Under the pieces are notes generated by a model that saw only the letters and a program-made list of their open reading frames with translations, ran no database searches and was not told where the DNA came from. Source: Wallemia ichthyophaga EXF-994 (Eukaryota > Fungi > Basidiomycota). From it: 32,000 nucleotides of DNA. The stretch covers positions 1 through 32,000 of the forward strand of contig NW_008806278.1 of the NCBI RefSeq assembly GCF_000400465.1, in the 5' to 3' direction. A program made the position numbers and the translations under genes. Shown in pieces: positions 1-19,919 of this stretch; position 1 is the stretch's first letter, and every line of letters begins with the position of its first letter.

Positions 1-321
1 AAGCCCAAACCTTAACAAAACCTTAACATTAACACTTTGAGAGACCAAAGTCTGCTTAGAAAATTCGTATCGGGTTCGGAAACCAACACCGTACGCCGAT
101 GCTAGTCCTTAATTTTGATACATACCGCCTCATATTATTAAATTAGAAGAGAATGATGTCATAACAAAGCATAGAACTCTCAGTAGAACGAATGACATGG
201 ATGATATGAAAAAACCACAAATCCAGTGTGTAAAGAGCGTGTAACGAAAGATATAAAAGTCCAGTGAGTATTGTTGAAGAGAGTAAAACATCAATCAGTC
301 AGTCGGGGCGTATGAGTCCAC

Positions 322-885
322 TTAAGCGCTGCAATCATCCCACTCTGGCTTTGATACCGGCATAATGTTAGCTACTGGAGGGCTGGCCCAGTCGGCAACG
401 TCGTTAATGGATTGCACAGGTGCGTAATCTGGCATGGTGTAATCAGGGACTTTGACGCCATTGTGAACGCAGAGAACCTCGTCGACGTATACGTTACCGC
501 AATGTTCATCGATTTGGGGGTTGTTGAGCCAGAGAACCGTGGTGTTAATCTAAATCAAGTTAGTAAAACACTACAAAAAGTAAAGTAGACCTACTTGGTT
601 GTTGTACGCGATAGAATTGCACGTGTCATTTTCCTTGACAACGTAAGTCTCTGTGCAGTCTGAGCCAGGCCAGCCGAGACAAAGCTCCTCGCCCTTCTGG
701 AGGTTTGTGCATTCTTCGTTGATCTTGTCAAAGTTGGTTGCGGCTAATTGGTATGTGGAGATGCCTTGATCAGCTGAAATCTGGTCGCAATATTCACCAC
801 CCTTGACGGTGTAGTTGCGTGTGCACGAGGCACTGACTGATGCGACAATTGCTGCCAAAGCGAGTGACTGGACTGAGAATTGCAT
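322..885 (-). CDS. Secreted LysM-domain (x2) protein, ~172 aa
   Basis: Exons 885-595 and 549-322 with a 45-nt intron (GTAGGT..TTTAG, CTAAC branch). Signal-peptide-like MQFSVQSLALAAIVASVSA, then Cys-flanked fungal LysM repeats (CTRNYTVKGGEYCDQIS..NL..GEELC; CTETYVVKENDTCNSIA..INTTVLWLNNPQIDEHCGNVYVDEVLC). Confidence 0.9.
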
Positions 886-1196
886 TTTATTAGGTTGTAA
901 AACGGGTATTCCAGAAGACAGTGGTGGTAGATTCCTAAGGAGCAACCATTTGCTATTTTGGGGTGGCTCTCAGCGGAAGGGGTGTTTTGTGCGGTCTGTG
1001 CACTGATTGCACTCACGTGATAAGGCGGACGCGGGCAGTAGTAGTAGTTATATTTTTTATTATAATTATAATTTAATTTCTATATAAATTTATACATCTA
1101 TTTCTTATGCTTAGAAGCCATTTCAAGCCAATACGACCTCTCATCCTCGAATGAGCGCGTCTGCAACTGCGTAACTGTTAGTAAATTAAATTACAC

Positions 1197-3122
1197 TCAG
1201 TTACGTAAACTCACAGCTAGTGCCGAGTACGCGCTCGCTAGCCAATCTCCATTCTCGCTCCTGCCTGCTGCTTTCTCGATAACACTCTGCACCAACGAGC
1301 GCAATCTCTTGATGTTTGATTGCATCATCATCTGATCATCAGATGTAGAAAGCTCCTTTAATGAACTGTACAGAGTCGCGTATCTCCTGCTGACCTTCTC
1401 AGCCAGTTCCGGGCTAACTCTTTTTCCACTAAAACCCATCGACGAGCTGACAAAGTTGCCAGCCGTACCGAGAAGACTGGCGGAGGGCGCCTGGGTTTCC
1501 TCAGCAAGTGTCTGTAAGGCTAGTACTCTGGCATCCATCTCCTTCTGAAGCAGCGGCCAAAGCGAAATCCTCAAGCCTGCACAGAGATTGCTTGCCGGTA
1601 GACAACCCCTATTCAAGCACACCTGGTGTGCCTCGTCGTTTATTCTGATCATACTAAAAATAGCGCTTGGTAAGGTGGTCGCCGTGGGTATCTTGAGTAA
1701 GTCACCTTTTATCTGATTAAATGCCGTCTCAAACACTTGATTCCAGATGTGTTGTGTGGATTTAAGAGATCCTAGCTCGCTTGCAATGGCAACCTCCTTC
1801 TCCGAGAGAAAGACGCCAGGTTTGATGCTTTTGTCGTGGTATAATGAGTGCAGCGAGTCGTCGAAGAAGCGAGCACAGAATGCAAATTCTGAGCACGCAT
1901 TGTCTATGAAGACAAGCAATAAGCTTCTGAAGATTGCTTCAGGGGGTAATTTCTATAAGAATCTTATGTTAGAATCACTCTCACGTTGTTTTCAACCCAC
2001 AAAGTTCTGATCGTCAGCCTGGTATGCCAAAAAGACTGACGGTCCATCCAAAGTAGAGTAAGTGAGTCGCTGCTTGACACTATCGAGTTCATATGGCTCT
2101 TCGTTGCTTTCCCATGCATTTGCCGAGTTGCCGATTGCGAGCTCTTGGAATCTGGGTTCGATCTTGAACGCCTCTCTCGTATATCTCACCAAGCACGTCT
2201 CGTAGTAGCCTCTCGCGGCATTTGCATAGACACGTTCAACCTCATGAGCAGCCCGTGGCTCTTGTCTTTTGAGAAATGCGTACAAAGGCGCGTACTTAAA
2301 CAGCACTGCTGTCTGATGAAACGCGATGTTGGACGTCGCGGAGGCTTGGAAGGGCACAAACAGACTAAATAGTTTACCACGTATCTTGTCTGCAGCCTGT
2401 AAATGTTTTGAGCTCATCCCATACCTGTCAACACCCCACAAACCTTCGTTTTGAGCGCCTGTAAGACACTCTGCAACTGTACTCTAGCTTTGACATGCTG
2501 ATGCTTCTCAACTGAGCGCAGAAAGCCCTCGATGCTCTTACACCCGCTAATCCAAGCATCAACATCTGTTAGCTCCTGGTTCATGATGAGGTTGATGAGT
2601 TGCGGAGGAATGATTAGCTCTTTGAGTAGCCCATCGATTTCAGCTGCCTGTGCTCTCTGTTTGTGCAACTGATTGTCTATTTCGATGGATTTCGTCTGTA
2701 AAGAGCTGATCTGTGAACTCGTTGATAACATAGATTGCTGGAATGTGGAGAGGAAGTTCGCGAGTGTTTCCGTATCTTGTACGGAATGCTTGATAGAGCT
2801 ATCCAATTCCATCGTCTGTGCTGCCGTGCTCAGGACTGGATGATCAGCGTTATCTTAAGATTACGACGCAGCTCACATTCGTCATCGACGGTGCGCTTAA
2901 GAGAATCATAAACATCTTCTATATCTCTATCGTCACGTTTAAGCATTTCAATGACGCACTGCCATTCCTCGTCAGTGCCTTGGTATGACACATCTTCCCT
3001 GATTGCTGGAGATGGCGCTGGGTCGAAGATTGCGTCGAGCTGATGGAGATATGAGATTAATGGAAAATACGCTATATGCCACGCACAGCTGGCGCTATCG
3101 GCGCTGTCGGTGCTGTATCCAT
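1197..3122 (-). CDS. VPS52: GARP complex subunit Vps52/Sac2 family protein, ~580 aa
   Basis: Exons 3122-3087, 3039-2877, 2835-2444, 2396-2001, 1952-1197 join in frame via 47, 41, 47 and 48-nt GT..AG introns. Family-like motifs ETLANFLSTFQ..LS..S.QI..LQ.KS, IIPPQLI, FRSLLLVFIDNACSEFAF. The two 5' exons are missed by the ORF track. Confidence 0.85.
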
Positions 3123-3146
3123 CTTGGCTGTTGGAGATTAACCACC

Positions 3147-3878
3147 ATGAACAGATTCACGAGAGGGATAACAACAACGGTAGCCAGACTCAAGACGGTC
3201 AAAGTGGGTCGAATGGGCTGTCAGTATTCATCTCACGCTCGTAGGACTCGAAGATGTCTGGTGTCTTCTATCACCAGCAGCAACCAGAACGCTGGGCTGT
3301 TAGTTTGCTTGATAAGCTCCCAGAGAACGCGCCAAAAAAGCTAGTGTGTGGATACGTCAATACTGCTAGCCCAGTCTCAACGGAACTCTACAAATCACTC
3401 GAGCAAAACGATGAATTCATCGATTTGCTACAATCTGTTGTGCAGAATAACTTTACAAAAGATCAGCACGTTATGTGAGTTGATTGAGTGCGTTATCAAA
3501 TAACAAATCTCATCGATTTCCAGTCAAGACGCTTTTTTTAGAGGTGAAGGTTGGATACCTGTGATGGGTGCGTGGCATGCTCTCTTGCCAGCAATCTGTT
3601 TATAGCGCAAACCTAGATGAACGCGCTCCTCAGACTTTAGGTAGAGCCGGTGACCCTGATGACTATCTTGGCATGGTTTTGGTGGAAGGTGGCGGTAAGG
3701 TGAGTATATGCTAGCTAGACGTACGCAACACTCTCATGCAACACCCTCATAGATCAATGCGTCTACTTACGAGCGCACGCCTACTTACAGATTAGCAACA
3801 CGCGACAATGGCTTCATGAAGTTATCGCCCGCTCTCGACAAAGCCCTGAGAGAAGCGCTTAAAGTTGAAACAAAGTAG
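3147..3878 (+). CDS. Conserved fungal hypothetical protein, possibly mitochondrial
   Basis: Exons 3147-3203, 3245-3474, 3524-3567, 3617-3699, 3753-3878 join in frame via 41-53-nt introns. Spliced core EGWIPVMDERAPQTLGRAGDPDDYLGMVLV..YERTPTYRLAT resembles a fungal family I recall but cannot name. The N-terminus MNRFTRGITTTVARLKTVK is basic with no acidic residues. Confidence 0.75.
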
Positions 3879-4034
3879 ATTCATACTAGAACATTCCCTC
3901 AACAACTCTGTAATGTAGTACATTTATTATTGCTGTCGTCAATTTTCTACTTGATTGATAAGAAAATACAAATTGAATCCCAAGTGTGCAACACTTCTAT
4001 TAAAACACTTCCTTTACGAACCTTCTATTCTCTT

Positions 4035-6377
4035 CTAGCTATCATCAATCTCCTCGTCATCTGAAAGTGCAAACTCTTCAGACACGTTCTCCTTTTTGGC
4101 TTTTCTCCGTTGCTCAAGAGACGCCCATTCGCCTTCTCTCTCGCCAGTATACGTGAATCCTCTAAAAGTATCGTGAGTGCGGTTGTTCTCGTTAGGTATC
4201 GGGTTTTCGTCAATTTTTGGCCTGTCGTCAGATACATGCGGCCTTTCTGTTTGTTTATCGAATGATTTGCGTGGCTCTTTGTTGCTTTCACGGCTCTCGC
4301 GATTCACGTGCTGACCAGATGGTGTTCCATGTCCAGAACCAAGTGCTGGCTTGAAGACTTCCTCATTTCCATCCACATCAACTCTGTCTGGAGCAGCAAC
4401 ATCGTCATCCCAAGGCACACCGTGCTCTCTAATGTCAGCACCTGTAAACTCAGTGTCAAAGTTGGCGACACTCTCATCACTTTCAACCAGCGGCTTGAAC
4501 GGTGGGGTGACCTGTCTGTTGGCAAGTGCATTCCAGTCAATTGATTTGAAAAATGGATCTTCCTTAAGCTCTGCAGCGTCTCTCTTGCTGCCCATCCTGT
4601 GTTCTGGGTTTCTGTTTAAAAGACCTTTGACAAATTGCTTTCCTTCATCTCCAATAACTCCCTTTGGGAATCTAATCTTCCCGAAGCATATGTTTTTGTA
4701 CATTTGTTGTGTATCTTCGGCATAAAATGGTGACCAACCACAACACATCTAAAAATCGTTAGTAAGCAAACAAACACAATATTTTCACATACCTCAAACA
4801 ACAACACTCCTAGTGACCAAAAGTCAACCAGCATGGAGTATCCATCGTCATTGAGTAGTACCTCAGGTGCAAGGTACTCTGTTGTTCCACAGAAAGTTGA
4901 AGTGAGTTGGTCTGCTGGTAAATCAGGTTTTGATAATCCAAAGTCACATAAAGCAACGTGACCAGTTGCATCCAGTAAGATATTTTCAGGTTTAAGATCA
5001 CGGTAAACAATGTCATATTTGTGGAGGTGTTCGAGTGCAAGTACGAGCTCGGCTATGTAGAATCTTGCCCTTTCTTCGCTAAATCTGCCTTCTCTTTGTA
5101 AATGCCAGAAAAGCTCACCACCAGATTTGTAATCCGTGACAAAATAGAGCTCTTTTTCAGTCTGGAAGCTGAACTTCAAACCAACTAAGAATGGACACTC
5201 CAGCGATACTTGCAGAATCTTACGCTCTCCAATAGTGTGAGCAACTTCTTTCTTTGCAATGATTTCCTTCTTAGAGAGAACCTTCATGGCGTAAATACGC
5301 TTAGTATCTTTCTTGCGAACCTGGAAAACTCTACCAAAGGTACCTCTGCCGATCAATCTCAGAAATTCAAAGTCTTTCGGAATGAGAGAATGTTTATTGG
5401 CGAAGCGTTCATATAATATCTGCAAACGAATTTCACCGGTTGTAATTTCTTTACCATCATCGCCAAATCTGGAGAGCTCATACCAGTGATCGATTTCAGC
5501 ACCTGGAGCGAGGTGTGGACGGATTTCCTTACTACCAACGTATTTCTCTCCCTCATAACCCAAGTAGTGTACAACGCTGTCGTCTTCACCTGGTTGGGGG
5601 TCAATGGTGAGGTTAGCCAGACTTTCATCCGCAGTTTGATTTGAAGGGCTTAAAGTGGCTGCAACGTTTGGTGCTGAGCGATCTCTATCGTAAACAGCAA
5701 TTTCAAGAGGGGAATCCTCTCTTGAAACGTCGAAAGTGACTTGATGCTTCCATACCGGAGAATCTCCGTTTTGACCTAAAACGCCGGTGACTGGTGGGCT
5801 TGATTTGTTGGTAGGGTCTGGAGTTGTAGGAGTACGAGCACCGGATGATGGCGTTCTTTTCAAAGTGGATTCCAACTTCTTGGGGAAACCTCTGGCAACG
5901 CCTTCTGTTGCACCGATTGGCTCTCTACTAACAAATTCATTGTTTTCAAATGAGACGACTACGTATGAATGTGCTTTTGTGCTATCAACCACAGCGAGTC
6001 TCCTCGCCTCCATAACCTTGACTGTGAGCAATCCCTTACTGCCAAGAACATCCTTTGAGGATTGAGATTTGAACGGTGGCTTTGTATTTGTCAACGGTGT
6101 ACTGGCGCCGGATGTGGTGGCTGAAGTCGCCGTGGTTGAACTAGATAAATGGGGAGCTGGATATAGTGTAAGGGAGTATTTTTATTTAATCATCAAACCT
6201 ACCTGTATTATGTTGGCTGATTTCTTTCTCCCGCCTCTCTTTGATCGTCGTCTCGAATGGATTTGGCTCCTGCCTCGAATTTGCAGACCGTGGCTTGGGC
6301 GTCGCAGAATCCTCTGCGTTACTCTTACTAGACGTCAGGTGCGTCGTCGGTGCCGCTGGCGTCTTGATTTGCTCCAT
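4035..6377 (-). CDS. SCH9: AGC-family Ser/Thr kinase Sch9/Akt-like with C2 domain, ~750 aa
   Basis: Exons 6377-6203, 6156-4793, 4748-4035 (46 and 44-nt introns). C2-like region, then GRGTFG, YRDLKPEN, DFG, activation loop TFCGT and C-terminal hydrophobic motif FRGFTY. Confidence 0.93.
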
Positions 6378-6433
6378 TGATGATTGTCGAATATTGAGAG
6401 TGATCTCAGTTATCCATGGAGTACAAAATTAAA

Positions 6434-7991
6434 TTACTTGGAATTTACACTGGTGGATAATATGCTCTGCCTAAGGTTATGCGCTTTCTCACGCGTGCTC
6501 TTTGATGCCGCTGGTGTTTGCGTCGTCTGCTCCTCGTCAGAATCGTCGTGAACGCCTCCCGGAATAAGCAGTTGGTCAAGTTCCTCTTGAGTCAGTTGAC
6601 GATTCTCTTCTTTAAGCACTGTCATCTTACGTTTAATTACCCTTCTTATCAGATTTAGCTGTTCTTCTGTGTAAAATCCGGTGTTTGAATCAAAATTCTC
6701 GATATGGCCTTGTTCATCATGAATCAGCTTGTAGCAATCTTCATCAGTCACATCACATAGCTGGAAGTTTGCAGCATCTGTTACATTCTTTCCATCAAAC
6801 TTGTGGCTTTCTGCGCTTGGTTCTTTCATCTGAGACGTTTCGGGTGCTGTTGTCCCCGGAGTTGATTGCGGAACTGAATTAGCTTTACCGGAGTTTCCTG
6901 TACTTGCTCGGCTTGTAAATGTTTGCCTGTGCTTGCGGTCCCTCACCCCTACCAGACGAGTCTGGATACGTTGATAAATGCGATTTGCGCTATCTAATCT
7001 GGGATCCCAGTTAATTCGACACATAACATCTGCAAATGGTCCCGACTGGAATGTGTATGAGTAAGCTGCCATTGATATCTTGTGGTTCAATAAAAATCGC
7101 GAATCCTGAGGTGAAAATTGGTTCAGTAACGATGCTCTCGACCACGCTGGCCTCTCTTTGAAAAGGTTTTCAAGCCTCTGCAGCACATCTTTCCTAGGGT
7201 ATGTATCTATAAACTCGGACGCCTCCTTAACAGGTGCTGAAGGAGCTGGATATTGATCCCAAGTGATTGTATCACCACTGTCAACCTTTGCGCGATTTTT
7301 GCTGATGAGACGCTCGTAAGTCTGTCCAGTGGCCTTGTTAACACCTGTAGTCTTTTCAGGGTTGTATCTGCTCTGGTATAGGTAGTTGTTGAATGTCTGT
7401 GCTCTGTAGAATTTAGGGGGTTGAATGAGACCTATCGGTTGACTGTTTAAGCCCTCGATATTCTCGCCGCGCGCCTTCCTCAGACGATTGCCTTTTACAC
7501 GACTCTCCAGAAACTCAATTTGATCGCCATTTTTCGGCAATTGAATGTTTCTAAGTGCATGGATGCTTTCATTGAGATTGTCGGAAAATACTCTCTCGTT
7601 GATGTTATCCAAATAGTCCTTCTGCGGTAGATGTGATGTAAAATCTGCGATTTCTGCGCGCTGTTAATTATAAACGCTACGCCCGCTAACCCCACCAACC
7701 TCTGAACTTGGCTGTGACAGGAATAGAGCCAATAATCTCCGCTTTGAACTGGTAATGCCACTGACCCTCGATCATCTTCCTTCTGCGCCTTATTCTCAGT
7801 GCGTAGTTGTTGCTTTCGCTGTACGTCGCCGTTATGCTGCTATTTACGCTGATATCGAGGCAGAGCGGCAGGCGCTTATCGAAAGCATCTTTGATAATAT
7901 CTACGCCACCAAAAATGCTCAAATATTGCAATTTTTCTTCCTCGCTGACGCTACCGAATAATTCGATTGCTTCCAATTGAGTTAACGTCAT
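6434..7991 (-). CDS. TFC1: RNA polymerase III transcription factor TFIIIC subunit (Tfc1/tau95/GTF3C5), ~503 aa
   Basis: Exons 7991-7700 and 7653-6434 (46-nt intron) give ..IPVTAKFREIADF... Other motifs: IQPPKF, LENLFKERPAWSR, YTFQSGPF..RINWDPR, FQLCDVTD, GFY. Confidence 0.85.
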
Positions 7992-7998
7992 CGTAGAG

Positions 7999-9135
7999 AT
8001 GGAAGGAGGATTGAACAAGATAAGCTGGCTCAGAGGGAACAATGGCTTCCTTAACAGCGTATTCAAGCAGTCCAAGTTTATTCCACTGCATAATCTTAAT
8101 CCATTGATTAGAAATGGGGATAACACCTTGGCTTCGATACCTTACAGCGAAGCAGAGCCTTATATTGGAAGCAATAACTACGGTGAAGGCATGTCCCAGA
8201 TCAATCAGCGCTTTTTGGAAGGCTATAGGCAGTCGAAAACTGTGGTGGCGTTGCTAGGCGTGAAGGAAAGCATCGATCAGAAGGCAAATGATCCACAATA
8301 TACGCCTTCAGGAACTGTTTACTTTTGTTTCGACGCTTCTTCTTACCCCAAGGAGCATTTCGAATCTCATGACGTAAAATTCCGCGATTCTCGCTCTTTG
8401 ATTGGCTATCTCAATCTACACGACTCAAAGATTATCGCCCAAGCGAGATCTATTGTGGATTGGAATTTACGACACAAGTACGATTCTGGTTCTGGGAAAC
8501 TCAATTATAGCTGCTGGGCAGGTTGGAAGCTCTGTTGCAGTTCTGTGTTTGATAACCAGGATCAACCATCACATAGCTGGAAAGGCGTTCAAAACTACCA
8601 CTACCCACGCACAGACCCTGTTGTCATTATGGCTGTTTTGTCTCCAGACAGATCAGCTATTTTGCTCGGACGTAACAAGCGCTACGCCGGTGGTATGTAT
8701 AGTTGCTTAGCTGGTTTTGTTGAGGTTGGTGAGACATTTGAAGAGGCAGTCGCCAGGGAGGTGCATGAAGAGGCTTGCGTGCGTGTTCTCGACGTGAAGT
8801 ACTTCGCCTCCCAGCCATGGCCATATCCAAGTTCACTCATGACTGGATTTTATGCAATCGCCGATGTCAACAGCAACTATGAGATATCTAGAACGGACTT
8901 AGACGGAGAATTGGAAGGTGTGTTGGAGCAAGTTGTAGTAAAACAAATCATTAACAATGAAACAGACGCTAGATGGTTCACACGCGAAGACGTTGAGGAG
9001 ATGGTAAAGCGCTCGCCTATCAGTCTTGGTGATAAGCCACCAGATAATGTTCCCTTCGTTCCAAACAAGCATGCTATCGCAGGTGAACTGATTAGAAACT
9101 GGTTGGCTACTTTTGAAAAAAAGAGCGCAATTTAA
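7999..9135 (+). CDS. NPY1: NADH diphosphatase (NudC/Npy1-type Nudix hydrolase), ~362 aa
   Basis: N-terminal LNKISWLR, YPRTDPVVI, Nudix box GFVEVGETFEEAVAREVHEEA and NudC signature SQPWPYPSS. Removing a 48-nt in-frame intron (8918-8965) restores DGELEDARWF. Confidence 0.9.
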   Translation: MEGGLNKISWLRGNNGFLNSVFKQSKFIPLHNLNPLIRNGDNTLASIPYSEAEPYIGSNNYGEGMSQINQRFLEGYRQSKTVVALLGVKESIDQKANDPQYTPSGTVYFCFDASSYPKEHFESHDVKFRDSRSLIGYLNLHDSKIIAQARSIVDWNLRHKYDSGSGKLNYSCWAGWKLCCSSVFDNQDQPSHSWKGVQNYHYPRTDPVVIMAVLSPDRSAILLGRNKRYAGGMYSCLAGFVEVGETFEEAVAREVHEEACVRVLDVKYFASQPWPYPSSLMTGFYAIADVNSNYEISRTDLDGELEGVLEQVVVKQIINNETDARWFTREDVEEMVKRSPISLGDKPPDNVPFVPNKHAIAGELIRNWLATFEKKSAI

Positions 9136-9411
9136 TAGATTGAATTGGTATTCCTCATAAAAGAGGTAAACTAATGTTGAAAATTAGATTCTTTCAATGT
9201 ACATATATGGATAGGTAAAATGTTCACACATTTGTGGTGGAAAGTAGTAAATTCTGATGGTATTCCGTTTTAGTAACCTACACGTGTATTACAAACGTAA
9301 ATTTGAAATTTCGTGTTTTACATCAAAATCTTCTGAGAAGACCTAACAGGTATATACGCTGATTGAGTAATGAGAGGTGCTATTGATTTGCAACCGAATC
9401 ATCCCACAATG

Positions 9412-10816
9412 TTAAAACAAACCCAAACCATCACACCCCCTATACCACTCATTGTACCTTTCGTACTCATCAAACTCGTCATTCATATCCAAATCGAGAA
9501 GCTCGGTAGCTTCAAATATCTCGGTATACTCTATGTCGTCGTAAATACTTAGTATATCGTCATCTTGTGCGACAAAGTTCTCTAGATTTGCTGAAATTTT
9601 ACTTGGGAGTAATTCGTTACATTTCAAAGCAATGACTGTGTGCAATTTTGAATGTAAGTTAATAAATCTGTTCAAAGCTACCAACTTAATGTTGTGGCGT
9701 CTGCTACAGATGTTTAGCTCCTCCAGTAGTGGCATAGCAAAGTCGAAATGGCCTTTGTTGAACATATCTGAGAAAACAGGCGAGTAATATCCTTCTATGC
9801 TGAATTTGCGCACATTCTTGAGCTTGCTGAGAAACTCAGGCGCAAAAATATCATGATCAGCTGAGAAAACTGACCTAGGCAGCTGAACGTTTCTTAATTG
9901 ATCTCCTAATCCGTGCCATTGAGAAATATCGGCAAATCCCCAATAACACAAGTTCCGAAGTTTCGCTAATCGACAATTGCTGATGTCTGCGTAAATGCGA
10001 TTGAGCGTTAGGCTTTCAAGTCTGTCCATTGAATCTGGTAGGTTTACTTCACGATACTCTCTTGGAGATCTTGTTATCCGCTGCTCACGAGCATCTACTT
10101 TGAGAAGCTTTAAATTTGGCATGAGGCGGAGTATGAACGCCAGCGTTGATGGTCCGCGTACCCACTCAATACTCAAGTCGTAAACAAAGCTCTGTACCTT
10201 TTCGAAGCAGAAGTTGAGCATATCAAGCCCAGTGAAAAACTCGAAAGAGACATTATTTAGCATTATGTGTTTCAGACTGCTGCGAAGTTCTTTTGAAAAG
10301 CAGGCTGGGCGTAAAATAGCCTCCTGATCGCCTCCGTTAATGAATAAGTATTTGGCGTTAAGATTGCGTGGCAGTGTGACCTCTCTCGTGTTGATGTGAT
10401 ATACAACGCTAAATCTTGAAACATTCAAATCAACCAAGCCGTAGCTATCCTCGCATAGTTTGTTGTAAATGTCCTTATTCTCGATTATCAAGAATATCTG
10501 TCCAGTCTTCTTAGACTTGAGGCGCGGTGAAGCCATCCATGACTTCAGTCTCTGGGCATCCACGTCATTCTGGAGTTTGAGTACGGCCGATGAGTAGACT
10601 TGCGTAAGATGTTGATAAGTAATTGAATCTGCACTGCAGCCAAAACTCACTATGTGAATGTGTGAGCGCTTCACTCCAATGTTTGTTGACGGCTGATAGC
10701 TGGTAGTTCAATTTCCGATATTTATCGGTGAGGGTGTCGGTGGTGCGTTTATCAAGGTGGTTAAATATCGACAGCAGAATATCAATAGGTAAATCTGACG
10801 CCTTAGATGTCCTCAT
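9412..10816 (-). CDS. F-box protein with degenerate LRR-like C-terminal region, ~450 aa
   Basis: Exon 10816-10651 has an F-box-like DLPIDILLSIFNHL..LSAVNKHW. A 52-nt intron (GTGAGT..CAAG) joins it in frame to exon 10598-9412, which has Leu-periodic segments (LRLMPNLKLLKV, LSKLKNVRKFSI, MPLLEELNI). Confidence 0.7.
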
Positions 10817-11016
10817 GAGGTTGACTGTAGATGTGCAAGATATGTTGTGTGCCGAAGTGGCGAAAAACCACTATAGAGGCACGCTGCTGGAGCACTTGAA
10901 AAGTTTGTAACTGAAAAATTATTGACATTATATTGTGACTCAGAATGTATCTAAATGCATGTGATGCAAACGAAGTTATACAAATTACGAAATAAACCGT
11001 TAAATCAAGCGGTGCT

Positions 11017-13162
11017 CTAGAGTAGTGCAGTACCAGCAAGAGATACAGATATGAGCAGTAACGTAAATGAGAATACAGTTTGCGCGCTTCCAGAGAATGT
11101 TTGTGATTTTCCTGATTCATTTGGTTGAATCAGAGGATCTTCATTTGACCTTTCCTGCACAAATTGAGGAACGCTTGGGATTTCCGGTTCATACTTAGAC
11201 ACATCCGACGTGTCGACCTGTTCACCATTCCAACACCAGTCGTTGAAGCAAGTCTGACACTCTTCACTTCTGTCTATGCCGTTTCTTTCTCTAGCTCTAT
11301 CAACAAGACCGCATGCGAGACAGCGCTTCCATTCGCCATCCTTGACTAAGCCGTTGAGAGACGTAGATGCCTCAGCGTTCTTCATAAGCGTAGAAGCCTC
11401 TTCCCAATCATATTCCAATTTGAAAGAACTCGTATTGACAGCTCCGACATATGGGTAATTTGGAATATAGGCAATGATTGGAGTGTGTCTGGATTCGTTG
11501 TAGTTTGTCACATCGGAAGAGTTACACCCAAAGAATGTTGGACGCGTGTTCAGGCCCTGCGCTACGAACTGTTCTGGTGTTGGTACATTCGCGAATGAGA
11601 TTTGATCATCATCGTGCATGGTACGATTGTAAGTGACGTATAGACTAGTGCCGTTTGGCCATCCATTGTTTGTGTTGGACGTTGCATCAAAGCCTATAGC
11701 CAAGTCCACTTGTCGTTCAGGTTTGATGTGTGCATTCAGTGGCAGGTTCTCGTGAGCTTCTGTTCGCAGCCTTAGTAATTACAACATTTGAGAAATAATA
11801 CCCACCTCCACCATCAATCAGAACGACATTTTCTGCATCGCTGATTTTGTTGGTGTCGTTTTTCCATCCATAGAATGGGTTTCTCCATTGTGCAACATCG
11901 TCTCTAGTCTCTGAAAAGTCACTGAGAACACTTTCGGCCATGTCTTGGAAGATGTCCCAGCCAGACAATGAGCCTTGTGCTTTGATAACGCCCTGGTTGA
12001 ATAGTGTCGCTGAGGTGCCAATAACAAATCCAAAGTTGTCCAATCCATTGACACACTGGTCGGTACCATTTAGTTGGCCGTCGAGGAGCTTTGTCCCGAC
12101 AAGAGCGATATCAATAAAGCCGTTTGGACTGGAATCACGCGCACCACCTCCGAGTGGGCCGTATGTCCCGAAGGAGTGGGGTGTCATCTCCCATATACTC
12201 GCATTCTGACCAACAATAATCTGATCAGGCTGGCGCTCAAGTGCTTGTACAATCGGGTAGGGCATGTCGTTCGATTGGAAGGTGCTTGCATCTCTAATGG
12301 CTCCAGAGAATGTAGTGTTTCTGCCATAGCCAGGGAACTTGCTCTCTGGTTCAGCGAGAAGATGGTAGCTGGGTGAAATTTAGACATTAAGAAAGCTTAG
12401 AAACTACCAAACCGACCTCAAAGCCCTCGCCCAATAGTCCGATATAGCGACTTCAAATCCAGCGTGTTTTTTATCCTCGATATCCTCAAACATATCATAA
12501 AAATAACTGAAACTGTCTAAAAATCCTGGATAAAAGATATTTTCGTCAAGTCTCGCAGTCTCCATCCATTCCCAAGTTGGCTTCATGTCCTGCGCAGCAA
12601 AACCGCCGACTGCCCAGGAACCGCCTGAGAGGCCAGACATGTAAGCGGCAGACTGGAGGAGACCAGCAGTCTCAAAGTCGACCGAGGAATTGCGGTTATC
12701 GAGTGCATTTATAAACCCAACGCCCTGGAAATAAAGTCAGTCTGAGGTACGCGAAATACGCAAGGTGCATATGTGAAAGAACACACTTACACCCAACATG
12801 GCACGATAACCTCCTCCAGACACAGCTATACCGAGTTTGGGTGCATTTGTGGAATTACTTGTAAGTTTATCCATGTCGTACGAGAGGTTTGCGCTGTCGA
12901 GCCAATCTGTGAGTGGATCGATGATCTTCTGCATACGTGCGTTGATATAGTCAGTCTCATTGGCGGAGAGTGCCTGTCCCGTCCTGATGAAGTCTGTGAC
13001 TCCCGCTGGGCACGAAGTGTTGTAAGGTGCGTATGAGAGATCACCCTCATCCCTGGAGTGGAGAGCTGGGTTGAAGGCTCGTGCGGCCAGATCGGAAGGC
13101 GGACTAGGGAAAGCGTTCGAGATCACTGCCAGCGTGAGTGCGCCAAATATCGCAGACTTCAT
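11017..13162 (-). CDS. PLB: Lysophospholipase/phospholipase B, secreted and GPI-anchored (copy A), ~661 aa
   Basis: Exons 13162-12791, 12724-12417, 12368-11806, 11759-11017. Signal peptide, catalytic motifs SGGGYRAM, GLSGGSW and IDGGE, and a hydrophobic GPI-type C-terminus. Confidence 0.93.
11483..11592. repeat. 110-bp segment identical to 14116-14225 (PLB paralogs)
   Basis: Base-by-base comparison shows no mismatch, while the flanks differ at many synonymous sites. Confidence 0.88.
11991..12251. repeat. 261-bp segment identical to 14578-14838 (PLB paralogs)
   Basis: Base-by-base comparison shows no mismatch. Confidence 0.9.
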
Positions 13163-13667
13163 TGCGGTCTTTGTGGATATAGATGAGGACGCTAAGTCAT
13201 CTCGGTGAATTTTATGGTCCCGTGAAAAATTGGGGTAGCGGAGTTGCGAGGAGGTACACATGGTGTTATTTGGAAGCTAAGAAAATCTACTTGGCATTAC
13301 TTTCTAACCTAAATATTGCCGTGTAAAACCCCTTGCTTACCTAATCAGCTCTCAAGGCACAGCGATCTGCAGATCTTAAAACACGCTTGAGGGATTTGAC
13401 ACGTAAATCATGCGAAATCTCACTCTCACAGCATGGAGCACAGTCACATTCTATCTGCAGTGTGAATAGAGGTACATTTGGTGGCTAAAAATAGCAGCAG
13501 GACCAGATTTTGTTGGCGCCAAGCGGTCCGATGTGTGACAGAATAAATAAGACATATCAAGATCGCTCAGATAACAAGAGTAAAATAGATATACTACGTA
13601 TTCGTACTAGGATTATACAACCATAGTTTCATAAGATGAGAATTTCCATAAGAGTCAGTCCAACGAA

Positions 13668-15758
13668 CTAAAGGAGCGCAGCACCAACAATCACTGCCAT
13701 AGCGAGGAGGACTGTGGTGGAAAATAAATTTTGCGCGCTTGCAGAGTCATTGGTTGCTTGAATCAAAGCATCACCATCTGATCTGTCCTGAACGAATTGA
13801 GGAACGCTGTTAATATCTGGCTCATATTCTGAGACATCTGATGTGTCGACTTGATCGCCACTCCAGCACCAGTCATCGAAGCAAGTCTGACACTCTGCGC
13901 TTCTATCTACGCCGTTCCTTTCTCTAGCTCTGTCGACGAGAGCACATGCAAGACAACGCTTCCACTCGCCATCGCTAACTAAGCCATTGAGAGATGTAGA
14001 TGCCTCACCATTATTTATCATGCCAATGTACTCCTCATCTGAATATTCCAGCTTGAATGTGCTCTGATTACTTTCAAAGACGTACGGATACGATGGAATG
14101 TAACCAACGATTGGTGTGTGTCTGGATTCGTTGTAGTTTGTCACATCGGAAGAGTTACACCCAAAGAATGTTGGACGCGTGTTCAGGCCCTGCGCTACGA
14201 ACTGTTCTGGTGTTGGTACATTCGCAAATGAGATCTGGTCGTCGTCGTTGATAGTACGGTTGTAAGTAGCAAACATGCTAGTGCCGTTTGGCCAACCCGA
14301 GCTGGTGTCAGCTGAAGCGTCAAAGCCAAGAACTAAATCGACTTGACGCTCTGGTTTAATGTGCGCATTGAGTGGTATGTTCTCGAGAGCTTCTCCTCCA
14401 TCTACCAAGACTACATTGGATACGTTGGAAATCTTGTTGGTGTCATTCATCCAGCCATAGAATGGGTTCCGCCATGATGCAACATCATTCTTCGATTCTG
14501 AGAAGTCACTGAGAACATTTTCAGCTATATCTTGGAAAACAGACCAGCCGGAAAGGGAACTCTGGGCTTGTATAACACCCTGGTTGAATAGTGTCGCTGA
14601 GGTGCCAATAACAAATCCAAAGTTGTCCAATCCATTGACACACTGGTCGGTACCATTTAGTTGGCCGTCGAGGAGCTTTGTCCCGACAAGAGCGATATCA
14701 ATAAAGCCGTTTGGACTGGAATCACGCGCACCACCTCCGAGTGGGCCGTATGTCCCGAAGGAGTGGGGTGTCATCTCCCATATACTCGCATTCTGACCAA
14801 CAATAATCTGATCAGGCTGGCGCTCAAGTGCTTGTACACTCGGGGAAGTCGATTGGAAGGTGCTTGCATCTCTAATAGCTCCAGAGAAGGTAGTGTTCCT
14901 GCCATAGCCAGGGAACTTGCTCTCTGGTTCAGCGAGAAGATGGTAGCTGGGTGAAATTTAGACATTAAGAAAACTTAGAAACCACCAAACCGACCTCAAA
15001 GCCCTTGACCAATAGTCAGCCAATTGAACCTCAAATCCAGCATTTTCCTTTGCGTCGACGTCATTGAAGATGTCGGAAAAGTAGCTGAATGCGTCGAGAA
15101 AGCCTGGGTAGAAGATGTTTTCGTCGAGTCTTGCAGTTTGCATCCACTCCCAGACAGATTTCATGTTCTGCGCGGCAAAACCACCGACTGCCCAGGAACC
15201 ACCCGACAAGCCGGACATATAAGCAGCAGACTGGAGGAGACCTGCAGTCTCGAAATCAAGAGAGGAATTGCGGTTGTCGAGTGCACTGATAAAACCGGCG
15301 CCCTGGATATTATGTCAGCTTCAGGAACGCAAGGCACGTGAGGCACGTGGAGGAGCACTCACGCCCAACATGGCTCTATAGCCGCCTCCAGACACAGCCA
15401 AACCGAGTCTAGGAGCGTTGGAGGTATTTGAGGTGAGTTGGCTGATATCGTATGAGAGACCAGCGCCGTTTAACCAGTCAGTGAGTGGGTCGATGATCTT
15501 CTCCATGCGTGAATTAATGTAATCAGTCTCGTCGGTGGAGAGTGCCTGTCCCGTCCTGATGAAATCTGTGACTCCCGATGGGCAGGAAGTGTTGTAAGGT
15601 GCATATGAGAGATCTCCTTCGTCTCTCGAGTGTATTGTGTTCTGCTGTGCAGCGTGTATGATGCCGCGGGAGATGAGATCTTCGGGAGCACTCGGGAAGG
15701 CGCTGGATGTGGTTGACAGTGTTATTGCCGCTGTTGCTCCCAGTATTCCAATTTTCAT
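13668..15758 (-). CDS. PLB: Lysophospholipase/phospholipase B, secreted and GPI-anchored (copy B), ~660 aa
   Basis: Exons 15758-15363, 15302-14995, 14946-13668. Same catalytic motifs (SGGGYRAM, GLSGGSW, VDGGE), signal peptide and GPI-type tail. Tandem paralog of copy A. Confidence 0.92.
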
Positions 15759-15902
15759 TTCACCGTCGTGCGTAAAGACGGCGAGTGCCAGCCAAGAGAA
15801 ACAGAATTATTAAGCTGTGTGAATAACCGTCTTAACTAATCGGATGCAAATATTCACAACAATTTCGAATTAAAGCGCCTTGTTTGCCCTCCTCCATCTT
15901 CT

Positions 15903-18154
15903 ATGAAATCACAAATATCAAATGACAGCAGCAATCAGTTCACGTGCGGGTTTTTATATTTTGTTTTATTTTCTAATTCCACGCAGACACATCCTCCTCC
16001 AGTTTCATCTCCCCTGCCAGCACGACGATGACGACGATTGGTCTTATCGCCTCCACGGCGTCCATGACGAGCACGACGAGCACGGCGCGCACCACCCCCA
16101 GAAAGTGCTTCTATGCCAGAGCAGCACGCCATTAGCCGCAGCCGCAGCCAACTCGTCCCGCTCTCTCTTTATATCGTGGGTTCAGTGTGGTTGTGATGAT
16201 AGACAGCTCACGCGATATCAGCACAGCCACCGATCCAGCGACGCTGCAGGAAGTAGCCATACCCACGCTCCACCCACTCAATCAATCCACGCTTGACGCG
16301 CCCATCACCTGCATTTCAACGGATACCTACGATAGCTACATTGCAGCAGCCACCACGACAAACATCCATATCTTGAGCCGCGACTTGCACCTGCTCCATA
16401 CGCTCGAGTCACCCGCCCCCCACATCCACAGCCTCTGCCAAAGATACTTGGCCTATATCCACCCCCACCCCACTTCCACTTCGGGTATTATCGCCGCTAA
16501 CAATCTCAATTACGCAGACAGGCCGAGCTACTCCACTGCCGAAATTGCCTCCCATCTCGCCAGCTACATTGAAGCCGGCTACAAACGTGGGCACAACACT
16601 TTCGACTCTCTGCGCAACACCTACTACAGCAGATCAGCGCCTGTTCCGAGCGAGAGTGTGAGTGCATCACCTCAGTCTCATTCTCAGGCTCAGGTTCAGT
16701 TTCAAGACTTATACCGCCACAGCAAGCATACACACGTAGTGCGAGTGCTCGACATACCCACTCAGCGCACAGTCGGTCTATTCGACTCGTCGCTTTCCCC
16801 CCTATCACACATCTCGCTCAGTCCTAGCAGCAGGAATGTTTTGGTAGCAGATACCAATGCGCACGTGTTCCACATCTACGAATTGCGTCCACGCCCGCTC
16901 ATCGGCGTGCATATGCGCGAAAACGACAGCGATTACGACTGTGTGTGGCACAGGTATGCACTGAGGCGGGGATACACGACTGCGCGCGTGCAGAATGTAT
17001 CTTGGAGCAGAAACGAGAGGTGGGTAGGTGTCACTACGCACACGGGTACCACACATGTATATCCTCTCAACCCTAACTCGGGTGGGAGAGTCACTGAGGC
17101 GCATGTCTCAGGTGAGCCTATCAGCATGGGGGCGGTGAGCAGTCACTCACACTCCCACTCTCACCTCTCTACCACCCTCAACAGCATTGTCAAAATAAGA
17201 CCCAGTGGGTCAGACGAGGGGGATCGGCAGCGTTGGCACACAATGCACACTATGCACTCCACGCACTCGGCTCACTCCACACGCTCCCCCTATGATGTCG
17301 CTTTCGCTTTCGCAGATGTGCACACACCCGCCAAGGGCAGTCTGGTGGTGTATGTCGCCGACAGCGCCCGAGACAAGTTTGCGCAGCTCGACTATACACT
17401 GAGTTGGAGCGAGGGGGGTGACTTGAGCGAGAAGCAGATGCAGACACAAAAGAAACCTCCCTCCGTGCATGCCGCACTGGGAAAGGTTTGCGACGTGGTC
17501 ACACAAGAGGAATCAAACGGGACATCAAAGGAGCAGCATATTTCACACACCATCTCACACCCCAGCAACCCTCCCCCCATTTGCCAAATGTCGCGTGGCG
17601 AGATCGAGACATTTGACGTATCGGCTTTGCGTAGTATATTCTCATCGCGACAGATTGAATTCAGGGCAGCGTCGACGGATATACTAGCGCGGTATGCGGA
17701 TGATGCGACTGAATTGATACGCCACTCGTATGTGTATAGAGTAAGACCGGAGGTGGAGGTAAGGAAGGAGAGGGAGAAGGCTAACGATGACGAGAAGAAG
17801 GACAGTAACGATAATGACATAGAAAAAGACATAGAAAGCACCATCGAATACACCATCGACCCCTCGTCTATCCATCACATCATCCCGGCTCTGCCCAACG
17901 GCGTCAATTATAAAAGCAGCTTGTCACTGCCTGATCAGCACACATTGAGAAAAATAATCAAGGGCTCTTATAGTAGAATCTCATCCACGTTCGGCAGTCC
18001 TGAGGCTGTGGCGGGCGGAGACACGGAAGACAATGATACTGCATCCGTAGAGGGTGATGTGAGGGTGTACAAAGAGGCAAAGGAAGCGTCTGAAGAAGCT
18101 GACCGCTTTGTTGTTGGGCTGGTCGACGATGAGGAGGAAGGGGAGGGGGAGTGA
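15903..18154 (+). CDS. BCAS3/Atg18-like (PROPPIN-related) WD40 propeller protein, ~720 aa
   Basis: Proposed exons 15903-15943, 15987-16175, 16222-18154 (43 and 46-nt introns, frame-consistent). Core motifs VVRVLD..LSHISLSPSSRNVLVAD..HVFHIYEL, WHRYALRRGYTTARVQNVSWSRNERWVGVTTHTGTTHVYPLNP. The 5' exon structure is less certain than the core. Confidence 0.75.
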
Positions 18155-18193
18155 GAGGGAGCAGCCATTTTGTGTCTTAATTCTTGCGCGCAA

Positions 18194-18216
18194 GCGCACA
18201 CACACACACGCGCGCA
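18194..18216. repeat. Alternating purine-pyrimidine tract GCGC(AC)6GCGCGCA between convergent 3' ends
   Basis: Read directly in the 104-nt gap between the BCAS3-like and PDK stop codons. Confidence 0.7.
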
Positions 18217-18258
18217 TTCTTGGATAACAAACAATACATAGATATAGTACATTTCCAA

Positions 18259-19746
18259 CTACTGCAGAGGTTCTGCACTAGAGGATAAGCGGTTGACTGT
18301 GGGAAGTGTGAGTATTAGTTTAGTTATCGAAACAGCATGCAATCTACTCACGATGAATATACACATCAGTCCCATATCCTTCCATGGAGATAAGGCGCAG
18401 ATCGCCACCGACTGAAGGAGGGTGAGATGAAAACAGTATGATGCACTCAACAACTCACAATAGCGTGCGTAAAGTCTCGATAACGGTAAGCCATACCCAA
18501 GACCGGCCATCGGAGCTTTATAGTCGCTGCCCGATTGCTCGAATTCGGGATCAAGGGCCGATCCCTCCATGGTAGTGTACATATACGTCCAGATGAGCGG
18601 GATAGCGCTGCGCGGTATACCACCACCCTCGTCCGAGATCTTGATAGTAATATCCTCATTCCCCGCTGCGACAATCACCTTAATAGGTGGCATCTGATCT
18701 TCGGCATCCACTCCGAAGCGCTCGATCACAGCTCGAAGGGAGTTTTTGATAATCTCAAAGACGATGTGGTTGAGGTGTCCAGGAACGTACGAAATTTCAA
18801 GATTGGGAGGGCAGATGAGCTGAACCTGTGGCGGTTTGAAGAGAGCGTAATGATCCTCAGCAATAAAGCGAGCATTGTCGATCGCTTCATCGCAAACATC
18901 GCGCACATTCGTCCTCTTGCATATGATGCCTACGTAATCAGGGTGGTGAGGAGTGAGAGCGTTGAGAGCGACATGCTGGCCAATGAGGAAACGTATACCA
19001 ATGCGCGACATGTAAAAGCGATCTAGGAATGACTGAATATCAGTGTCGACACCACCCGCACTGCGCTGATGTTGTTTGTACTCTAGCACTCCTTGCGCTA
19101 TAGTCGGTACGACGCTATCGTGTCGCCGTTTTATACCCTCGAGCAACCGCGTGAAGCTTTCGTTGTAGTGCGCGACAGAAGGTGGCCATTCGAGATCGGG
19201 TGTGTGAGCATGGTAGCGGGATTCGATGGGGATGCGACGGTATTTGTGTGTAGTTTGTGCGGCGTTATTGCCGTTGGTATTCCCGTTGCCGTTACCAATA
19301 CCATTCCCGCTCCCACTCCCACTCACTGGACCCGGCGTGTTCTCATCTTCCAGCTGCGCTAGATTCGGACTCGCTTCGGGAAGTCGGTCGGCGCGTCTGT
19401 TGGTCGGAGCGAACAATTGCGCGCGCACATCTGGCGGAATATTCGGCTGAGGGAAGTGTACGAGCTCGTCGAACGAGTGCGCATACCAACCCAGCACCTT
19501 CCTTATACTGGGCATCTCCGAGAGTTCGTTCGGTAGCGTGTTCAGCTCAACGCAGCGGTGCGCTAATCTTATTGGCAGCTCTTCCGAAAGGAAATTGCCA
19601 GCTCGCAACAACGTCCCCTGTGACGGATTAGATCCGAACATAACCATCTGCTGTAGTGATATACCCGACTGTGGGAAACTTGAGAAGTGGAGCAGCTTGT
19701 TCCACATCTTGGGCGTGATATTGTAGAATGCACTGCTGGCTGACAT
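18259..19746 (-). CDS. PDK: Mitochondrial pyruvate dehydrogenase kinase / alpha-ketoacid dehydrogenase kinase, ~461 aa
   Basis: Exons 19746-18459, 18411-18352, 18296-18259 (47 and 55-nt introns). Motifs [81 protein letters not shown]. An alternative in-frame ATG lies at 19821. Confidence 0.92.
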   Translation of the reverse strand: [495 protein letters not shown]

Positions 19747-19919
19747 TTCTTGAATTAATCGTCGTCGTCGTCCGTGAAAGAGTGACTCGACTCGTATAAT
19801 TCCGCTGACGTCAATTGTCATTCCCTCACGTGCACTCTGTTCCGATATTTCTCTATTATCTGTTTTTCACAACCGATGCAAGGTGATTGATAAATATACA
19901 TGATTTTACTTTTACATCT

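Follow-up and report, generated by a model that had tools for sequence, protein, structure and literature searches.

Seven nucleotides between divergent start codons: the TFC1/NPY1 gene pair of Wallemia ichthyophaga and the likely placement of its promoters in coding DNA

In the halophilic basidiomycete Wallemia ichthyophaga EXF-994, two genes transcribed in opposite directions, TFC1 (sfc1), encoding a subunit of the RNA polymerase III factor TFIIIC, and NPY1, encoding an NADH pyrophosphatase, begin at start codons separated by only 7 nucleotides (nt). The junction lies in the 32,000-nt stretch of DNA analyzed here (hereafter, the window), which corresponds to positions 1 to 32,000 of contig NW_008806278.1 in the RefSeq assembly GCF_000400465.1. 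Over positions 1-17991, the sequence of the window is identical to the beginning of scaffold KE007228.1 of this strain. The names TFC1 and NPY1 are orthology labels taken from Saccharomyces cerevisiae, although the host is not a budding yeast. The two genes form a genuine divergent pair of unrelated, conserved housekeeping genes. A core promoter does not fit into 7 nt, and each gene must therefore have its promoter in the coding DNA of the partner.

Direct reading of the window gives gttaacgtCAT, followed by the spacer cgtagag and by ATGgaagg. The features of the junction are as follows.

7989 to 7991, minus strand (first base 7991): start codon of TFC1/sfc1, read as CAT on the plus strand; conserved at every Wallemia locus, position -3 being A.
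7992 to 7998, no strand: spacer cgtagag, 7 nt, the sole non-coding DNA between TFC1 and NPY1, carrying positions -3 to -1 of both ATGs.
7999 to 8001, plus strand: start codon of NPY1, which is also the start of the 362-residue MAKER models from W. ichthyophaga strains (P0123, TIA77728.1).

The original prediction, made from the letters of the window, had proposed the order CAT-cgtagag-ATG with a 7-nt spacer at these coordinates, and re-reading the window showed it to be correct. With TFC1 starting at 7991 of the minus strand and NPY1 at 7999 of the plus strand, the orientation is that of a head-to-head pair. The prediction had further located conserved N-terminal motifs close to both starts, and these are indeed present in the open reading frames (ORFs). 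The minus-strand ORF from 7991 begins MTLTQLEAIELFGSV, with LEAIELFGSV at residues 6-15 (N-terminus MTLTQLE), and the plus-strand ORF from 7999 begins MEGGLNKISWLR, with LNKISWLR at residues 5-12 (N-terminus MEGGLNK).

The minus-strand gene comprises two exons.

7700 to 7991, minus strand: TFC1 exon 1 (97 codons plus 1 base), with the Tau95_N triple-barrel domain, supported by Pfam and by the cross-species coding pattern.
7654 to 7699, minus strand: TFC1 intron, 46 nt, GTTGGT...GCGCAG; the splice product is XP_009267034.1.
6434 to 7653, minus strand: TFC1 exon 2 including the stop codon (6434-6436), with the Tau95 helix-turn-helix (HTH) domain (Pfam PF09734, E = 2.2e-24).

An exact-sequence cluster look-up showed that the spliced product (503 residues) is identical, letter for letter, to XP_009267034.1, named 'Transcription factor tau subunit sfc1'. 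Splicing yields FREIADF, and the annotated W. hederae counterpart reads FREMADF. The Tau95_N domain (PF17682) was matched with 26.5 bits (cut-off 23.1), residues 23-103 aligning to profile positions 15-119 of 121. With profile position 15 at residue 23, the domain starts near residue 9. Matches to protein sequences in the PDB include S. pombe Sfc1 (4bji, E = 8.7e-16), human GTF3C5 and yeast tau95; the domain boundaries rest on these and on the Pfam matches, a homology search with spliced TFC1 having given two matches. With an N-terminal Tau95_N domain and, after it, the Tau95 HTH DNA-binding domain, the protein belongs to the TFIIIC tau95/Tfc1/Sfc1/GTF3C5 family. Across Wallemia, exon 1 is 62-82% identical at the amino-acid level, and between-species differences at first, second and third codon positions range from 10/9/27 to 23/16/56.

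The plus-strand gene also contains a single short intron.

7999 to 8917, plus strand: NPY1 exon 1, with Pfam NUDIX-like (residues 25-155) and NUDIX (residues 208-310) domains, supported by the family alignment.
8918 to 8965, plus strand: NPY1 intron, 48 nt, GTGTGT...AACAG; its removal reproduces the 362-residue model P0123.
8966 to 9135, plus strand: NPY1 exon 2 including the stop codon, from the spliced model.
7999 to 8190, plus strand: NPY1 codons 1-64, absent from the reference model XP_009267035.1 (Met65 start at 8191) and showing coding-type substitutions.

The product of NPY1 is an NADH pyrophosphatase, or NudC-type NUDIX hydrolase, matched by both PF09296 and PF00293. Its closest named relatives are Wallemia proteins. 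The succession of NUDIX-like and NUDIX domains, together with REVxEE and SQPWPYPSS in the invariant columns of the alignment, is that of the Npy1/NudC/NUDT12 family. Between the two domains, Pfam gave no match to the four-cysteine zinc ribbon (PF09297). At this place Wallemia proteins have KYDSGSGK where other fungi have KFCPxCG, the first cysteine pair being lost (about residues 158-185, window 8470-8560). In the family alignment, Wallemia NPY1 also lacks the 8-20 residues that precede the conserved N-terminal motif in other fungi, which is consistent with a protein trimmed to its functional edge. Two further observations can be made on this gene. The C-terminus is -KKSAI (window 9121-9135), as against SKL, SKM or AKM types in other fungal homologues, so that peroxisomal targeting of Wallemia NPY1 may differ. 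Moreover, the 48-nt intron is in frame and free of stop codons; the unspliced ORF has 378 codons for amino acids and is the form reported by ORF callers on Logan contigs.

The short distance depends on both ATGs being the true first codons. The original prediction had argued that neither start could easily move downstream, and this was borne out by the Pfam domain edges, by coding-type substitutions from codon 1 onward and by the lack of conservation of Met65. In between-species comparisons, the excess of third-position substitutions begins right at each ATG. NPY1 residues 1-64 are 71-88% identical across Wallemia, and differences in codons 1-64 are distributed over the three codon positions as 7/3/26, 7/5/31 and 17/9/32 in three species pairs; this third-position excess indicates purifying selection on the coding frame. 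The same residues hold the motif LN(R/K)(L/I)SxLR, which fungal homologues carry at their N-terminus; in the alignment, Wallemia NPY1 begins right at the edge of the conserved (A)G..LNRLSxLR. On the other side, the next methionine of TFC1 (M72) sits within the Tau95_N domain.

An NPY1 start at Met65 (8191) would leave 7999-8190 as promoter and leader of TFC1, and the intergenic region would be a normal 199 nt. This is what the reference models of W. ichthyophaga EXF-994 (XP_009267035.1) and W. mellicola CBS 633.66 (XP_006959793.1) propose, both having 298 residues and thus losing 64. The W. ichthyophaga model, however, comes from ab initio prediction with GeneMark-ES (PMC3849046). A start at Met65 would cut into the Pfam NUDIX-like domain and would leave outside the protein a region with conserved residues, a third-position excess and the family motif. 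Moreover, Met65 is replaced by Lys in W. mellicola P0132 and P0140. We therefore regard this alternative as very improbable.

Even less credible is the existence of a further upstream coding exon in one or both genes, which would make the abutting ATGs internal methionines. In W. ichthyophaga, the TFC1 frame is open for 50 codons before the ATG, but this extension contains no ATG and corresponds to the antisense of NPY1 codons. On the NPY1 side, an in-frame TGA stands 6 codons before the ATG. In W. mellicola, the frames of both genes are closed by a stop 5-7 codons before the ATG, and the stretch from stop to ATG contains no AG; reading through and joining a further coding exon upstream are thereby both precluded in that species. 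Spacer length varies across species by non-multiples of 3, which means that no reading frame is conserved through the spacer, whereas both ATGs and their -3 purines are conserved. The two situations that would have undone the predicted geometry, a start at a downstream ATG and additional 5′ coding exons, were thus examined by sequence comparison, and neither was upheld. Altogether, these comparisons show that both ATGs are, in all probability, the true first codons.

Public annotations of the locus differ on this point: three sets treat it differently and each is wrong somewhere. In addition to the truncated reference models, the GenBank model of W. hederae NPY1 (395 residues) is over-extended by 35 codons into TFC1, giving a 98-nt overlap with annotated TFC1; the frame of this extension is closed in W. 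ichthyophaga. The EXF-994 sfc1 model starts at 7991. Population genomes have NPY1 at Met1 (362 and 368 residues); in their W. ichthyophaga MAKER models, the starts have the locus coordinates 2993(-) and 3001(+) and are thus separated by 7 nt. These models were built from protein evidence and ab initio predictors, without RNA evidence (PMC6738226). The error of the population genomes is another one: there MAKER fuses TFC1 and the downstream kinase gene into chimeras of 1258 residues in W. ichthyophaga strains and 1172 residues in W. mellicola, one of which bears the UniRef name 'Serine/threonine-protein kinase SCH9'; the 56-nt spacer between these two genes is probably the cause of the fusion. 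More generally, gene-dense fungal genomes need start-codon curation before intergenic statistics can be trusted.

The arrangement is not particular to one strain. The spacer CGTAGAG (7 nt) was found in all ten other W. ichthyophaga assemblies fetched. It is replaced by TGTCAAG (7 nt) in W. hederae, by TGTCGTCAAG (10 nt) in the Wallemia from run SRR25399871 and by CGTCGTAAA (9 nt) in W. mellicola and in a close relative from SRR33769984. In each of these five lineages, both ATGs retain a purine at -3. The 7-nt spacer thus holds little beyond two start-codon contexts. Synonymous divergence is heavy, with a mean pairwise codon difference of 0.4-0.55 at conserved residues. The CAT-spacer-ATG layout common to the Wallemia loci argues that the juxtaposition of the two ORFs is not due to chance, and comparison of the loci shows that this close layout has been kept since the sampled Wallemia lineages diverged. 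An ancient linkage of TFC1 and NPY1 can be discarded, since the Tau95 gene is not beside NPY1 in Tremella mesenterica or in Ramaria rubella. The two genes therefore became neighbors in the Wallemia lineage.

Regarding transcription, we infer that each promoter is located in the first ~50-150 nt of the partner's coding sequence. Promoters and leaders within the partner's coding sequence had been anticipated by the original prediction; from the verified geometry, this stands for the promoters and for any leader longer than 7-10 nt. The following scenario can be proposed. In the Wallemia genomes, which are very compact, the DNA between the two genes has shrunk to 7-10 nt. Transcription start sites (TSSs) would be crossed, NPY1 transcription starting within TFC1 codons and TFC1 transcription within NPY1 codons. 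The leaders would then be short (some tens of nt), AUG-free and antisense to the first codons of the partner. Ordinary scanning, with a purine at -3, would translate both mRNAs. Finally, both genes are probably expressed at a low level, so that head-on interference over a short overlap would be tolerable. With modest confidence, we consider crossed start sites with short complementary leaders as the most likely arrangement, the TSS positions themselves being purely inferential. In all five lineages, at least 81 nt without any upstream ATG precede both starts; these ATG-free zones and the conserved -3 purine are consistent with crossed leaders.

Several points weigh against this arrangement. 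About 25% of random 81-nt windows antisense to coding sequence (CDS) lack an ATG, and the lineages are not independent. Other genes of the window show no clear depletion of upstream ATGs (median distance 64 nt versus 41 expected). Synonymous conservation in NPY1 codons 1-30 is no higher than in the rest of the gene across the five lineages. Crossed TSSs would also send polymerases toward each other and give complementary 5′ ends, features that selection might disfavor.

Alternatively, both TSSs may lie in, or at the edges of, the 7-10-nt spacer, giving near-leaderless mRNAs with 5′ untranslated regions (UTRs) of at most ~10 nt. In this case transcripts would barely overlap, and the core promoters would still reside in the coding DNA of the partner. 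In the compacted genome of Encephalitozoon cuniculi, 5′ UTRs are shorter than 7 nt, and reach 1-2 nt for some genes (PMC2803860). The Wallemia spacer is never shorter than 7 nt, which is about the minimum for separate -3 to -1 contexts of both ATGs. In addition, an AT-rich GAATAATTC is found 36-44 nt upstream of the NPY1 ATG, at the position expected for a TATA-like element. However, this AATAAT element is not conserved: W. hederae has CAATTC in its place, and the SRR25399871 species has TAAGTC. The CCC-like motif that precedes microsporidian start codons is absent before either ATG in every Wallemia lineage, the contexts here being GTAGAG and TCTACG directly before the ATG. Moreover, Wallemia species are free-living, with ordinary introns and no reported reduction of the translation machinery. 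In fungal scanning initiation, leaders under ~12 nt give leaky start recognition. On balance, near-leaderless mRNAs appear unlikely here, although they are the foremost alternative.

If promoters are embedded in the coding sequences, as both arrangements of start sites imply, regulatory elements might be visible as constraints on the codons. The original prediction had pointed to a CT-rich tract upstream of the TFC1 ATG as DNA that may serve both as protein code and as promoter or leader. The tract and the best-conserved block of the region are the following.

7995 to 8024, minus strand: pyrimidine-rich tract (25 of 30 positions C or T) just before the TFC1 ATG; it combines 4 bases of the spacer with the antisense of NPY1 codons 1-9.
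7921 to 7936, no strand: AAATATTGCAATTTTT, the best-conserved DNA block in the TFC1 5′ coding region (codons 19-24); candidate promoter element only.

The tract is present, as the reverse complement of 7995-8024, but the proposed double role found no support, for lack of any excess of synonymous conservation. Its CT-richness is explained by the conserved residues M-E-G-G-L-N-K-I-S, which use purine-rich codons. On the TFC1 side, codons 16-30 have a mean pairwise codon difference of 0.27, compared with 0.40-0.68 elsewhere; this dip was rejected as a positive sign of a promoter element, since it rests on 7 codons only. The block AAATATTGCAATTTTT lies 63-78 nt upstream of the NPY1 ATG and has a palindromic core, ATTGCAAT. 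This 8-mer occurs once in the window, against 0.87 occurrences expected by chance, and was therefore not retained as a shared site. The sole candidate for a shared regulatory element (7921-7936) is thus statistically indistinguishable from chance. The G+C content falls to 0.33 at 7900-7939 and 8060-8099. An AT-rich island resembling a nucleosome-free region was nevertheless discarded, because only these two modest dips are seen and the synonymous positions are not conserved. It can also be observed that a perfect 12-nt inverted repeat, ATTGCTTCCAAT / ATTGGAAGCAAT, occupies 7966-7977 and 8164-8175, so that the same 12-mer is in the sense strand of both genes. Since the NPY1 copy covers residues (IGSN) that other species do not conserve, this repeat is probably due to chance. 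Overall, codon-level comparison suggests that the coding DNA is not under the constraint of any strong sequence-specific promoter element.

External sources were also consulted. RNA-derived contigs were sought via protein clusters, and all Logan/ENA members proved to be unspliced genomic ORF calls or the kinase. Neither of the two Wallemia genome papers reports TSSs or UTRs. When the literature was searched for overlapping or bidirectional genes of this genus, no description of the present feature was retrieved.

The W. ichthyophaga genome has a size of 9.6 Mb and is about three quarters coding (PMC3849046). The junctions in the window are the following.

TFC1 ATG 7991(-) and NPY1 ATG 7999(+): divergent, spacer 7 nt.
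Vps52 ATG 3122(-) and ATG of a 179-residue gene 3147(+): divergent, spacer 24 nt, from the reference annotation.
PLA2_B ATG 15758(-) and BCAS3 ATG 15903(+): divergent, spacer 144 nt.
TFC1 stop 6434 and ATG 6377 of the sck1/SCH9-like kinase gene: tandem, same strand, spacer 56 nt (73 nt in W. hederae).
Remaining tandem gaps in the window: 200-505 nt.
Stop-to-stop (convergent) gaps in the window: 156 and 276 nt.

Of the three divergent junctions that the reference annotates in this window, two have no room for an intergenic promoter. The Vps52 spacer widens to ~28 nt in the SRR25399871 species. In W. hederae it is 34 nt long, and in the GenBank models of that species the two genes even share 2 nt, at a CATG. 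The 56-nt gap between TFC1 and sck1 indicates either that the sck1 promoter is within the TFC1 coding region or that both genes are co-transcribed. TFC1/NPY1 is therefore the extreme of a local pattern of tight packing rather than a singular device.

These spacings bear on the idea that the overlap works as a switch. With crossed promoters, TFC1 and NPY1 would be expressed in a mutually exclusive or anticorrelated manner, via transcriptional interference or duplexes of complementary 5′ ends, and this coupling would explain the conserved layout. Interference between overlapping units is an established mechanism, and a spacing of 7-10 nt was held while synonymous sites diverged heavily. However, no functional link connects a Pol III factor with an NADH pyrophosphatase, and the genes are apart in Tremella and Ramaria. 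The 24-nt and 56-nt spacings of unrelated neighbors suggest general deletion pressure rather than a selected device, and conservation may merely reflect the rarity of insertions in this genome. A regulatory switch is therefore considered improbable.

Other features of the window can be briefly described. Between NPY1 and the PLA2_B genes lies a 450-residue gene (9412-10816) with an F-box-like N-terminus, the main ORF of which has no Pfam match; in W. mellicola, PLA2_B comes directly after NPY1, 136 nt past the NPY1 stop. Two lysophospholipase (PLA2_B) genes are arranged in tandem on the minus strand at 11017-15758, with 660 and 661 residues in the reference. The G+C content is raised (0.51-0.59) at 16000-21000 and 26000-28000, compared with 0.38-0.50 in the rest of the window, and the second of these stretches coincides with a 718-residue ORF (25822-27978, minus strand) that has no Pfam match. 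Searches for a hidden RNA gene gave no Rfam or transfer RNA match at the junction or anywhere in the window.

What the locus could mean follows from its dimensions. The two genes share practically no non-coding DNA at their 5′ ends, so that the recruitment of RNA polymerase II has to be written into coding sequence. It is tempting, though doubtful, to generalize and to propose that Wallemia polymerase II promoters routinely sit inside neighboring CDSs, TFC1/NPY1 being a bidirectional promoter with almost no non-coding DNA. On this view, the mRNAs of the pair would have either microsporidian-style leaders of 10 nt or less, or crossed complementary leaders made of the partner's first codons. If one or the other were general for the 7-, 24- and 56-nt spacers, Wallemia would be a tractable model for promoter function encoded in coding DNA. 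With a few hundred base pairs, two conserved genes and several species, the locus is a handy test bed for the minimal size of a bidirectional promoter. It also lets one ask how a free-living fungus tolerates crossed or ultrashort leaders.

Genes on opposite strands whose TSSs lie within 1 kb of each other are termed head-to-head pairs (for example, PMC2648788), and such pairs are well studied in human, yeast and plants. TFC1/NPY1 resembles these bidirectional-promoter pairs by its opposite strands, its adjacent 5′ ends and an adjacency conserved in relatives; any regulatory DNA would have to be shared or interleaved. Ordinary bidirectional promoters, however, have ~100-1000 bp of non-coding DNA with a nucleosome-free region and two outward-facing start sites. 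The W. ichthyophaga pair has 7 nt and no intergenic promoter, and its start sites would be crossed or squeezed into the spacer.

Another parallel is offered by the microsporidia Encephalitozoon cuniculi and Antonospora locustae, in which compaction likewise pushes transcription signals against or into the neighbors. Their 5′ UTRs do not reach 7 nt, and long 5′ ends running antisense to neighboring CDSs occur in some cDNAs (PMC2803860, PMC3629993). Unlike these organisms, Wallemia belongs to the basidiomycetes, is free-living and has normal introns and a genome of 9.6 Mb. Moreover, start-codon correction in E. cuniculi removed most apparent head-to-head CDS overlaps, and signals stayed intergenic (PMC2803860), whereas correction at TFC1/NPY1 tightens the spacing from 199 nt to 7 nt.

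With crossed TSSs, the pair would also be comparable to TP53/WRAP53, having complementary mRNA 5′ ends and each promoter in the transcribed region of the partner. Such 5′-overlapping cis-natural antisense pairs of animals usually involve non-coding first exons and long introns. In Wallemia, by contrast, the putative overlap would hit the first coding codons of the partner. Finally, polycistronic and read-through transcripts were reportedly described in basidiomycetes by Gordon et al. in PLoS One in 2015. Polycistrons are a mode of expression for very short spacers and bear on the 56-nt TFC1-sck1 tandem junction. They concern same-strand neighbors, however, and cannot explain the divergent TFC1/NPY1 pair. 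Set against these systems, TFC1/NPY1 takes to an extreme what genome compaction is already known to do and involves no new mechanism.

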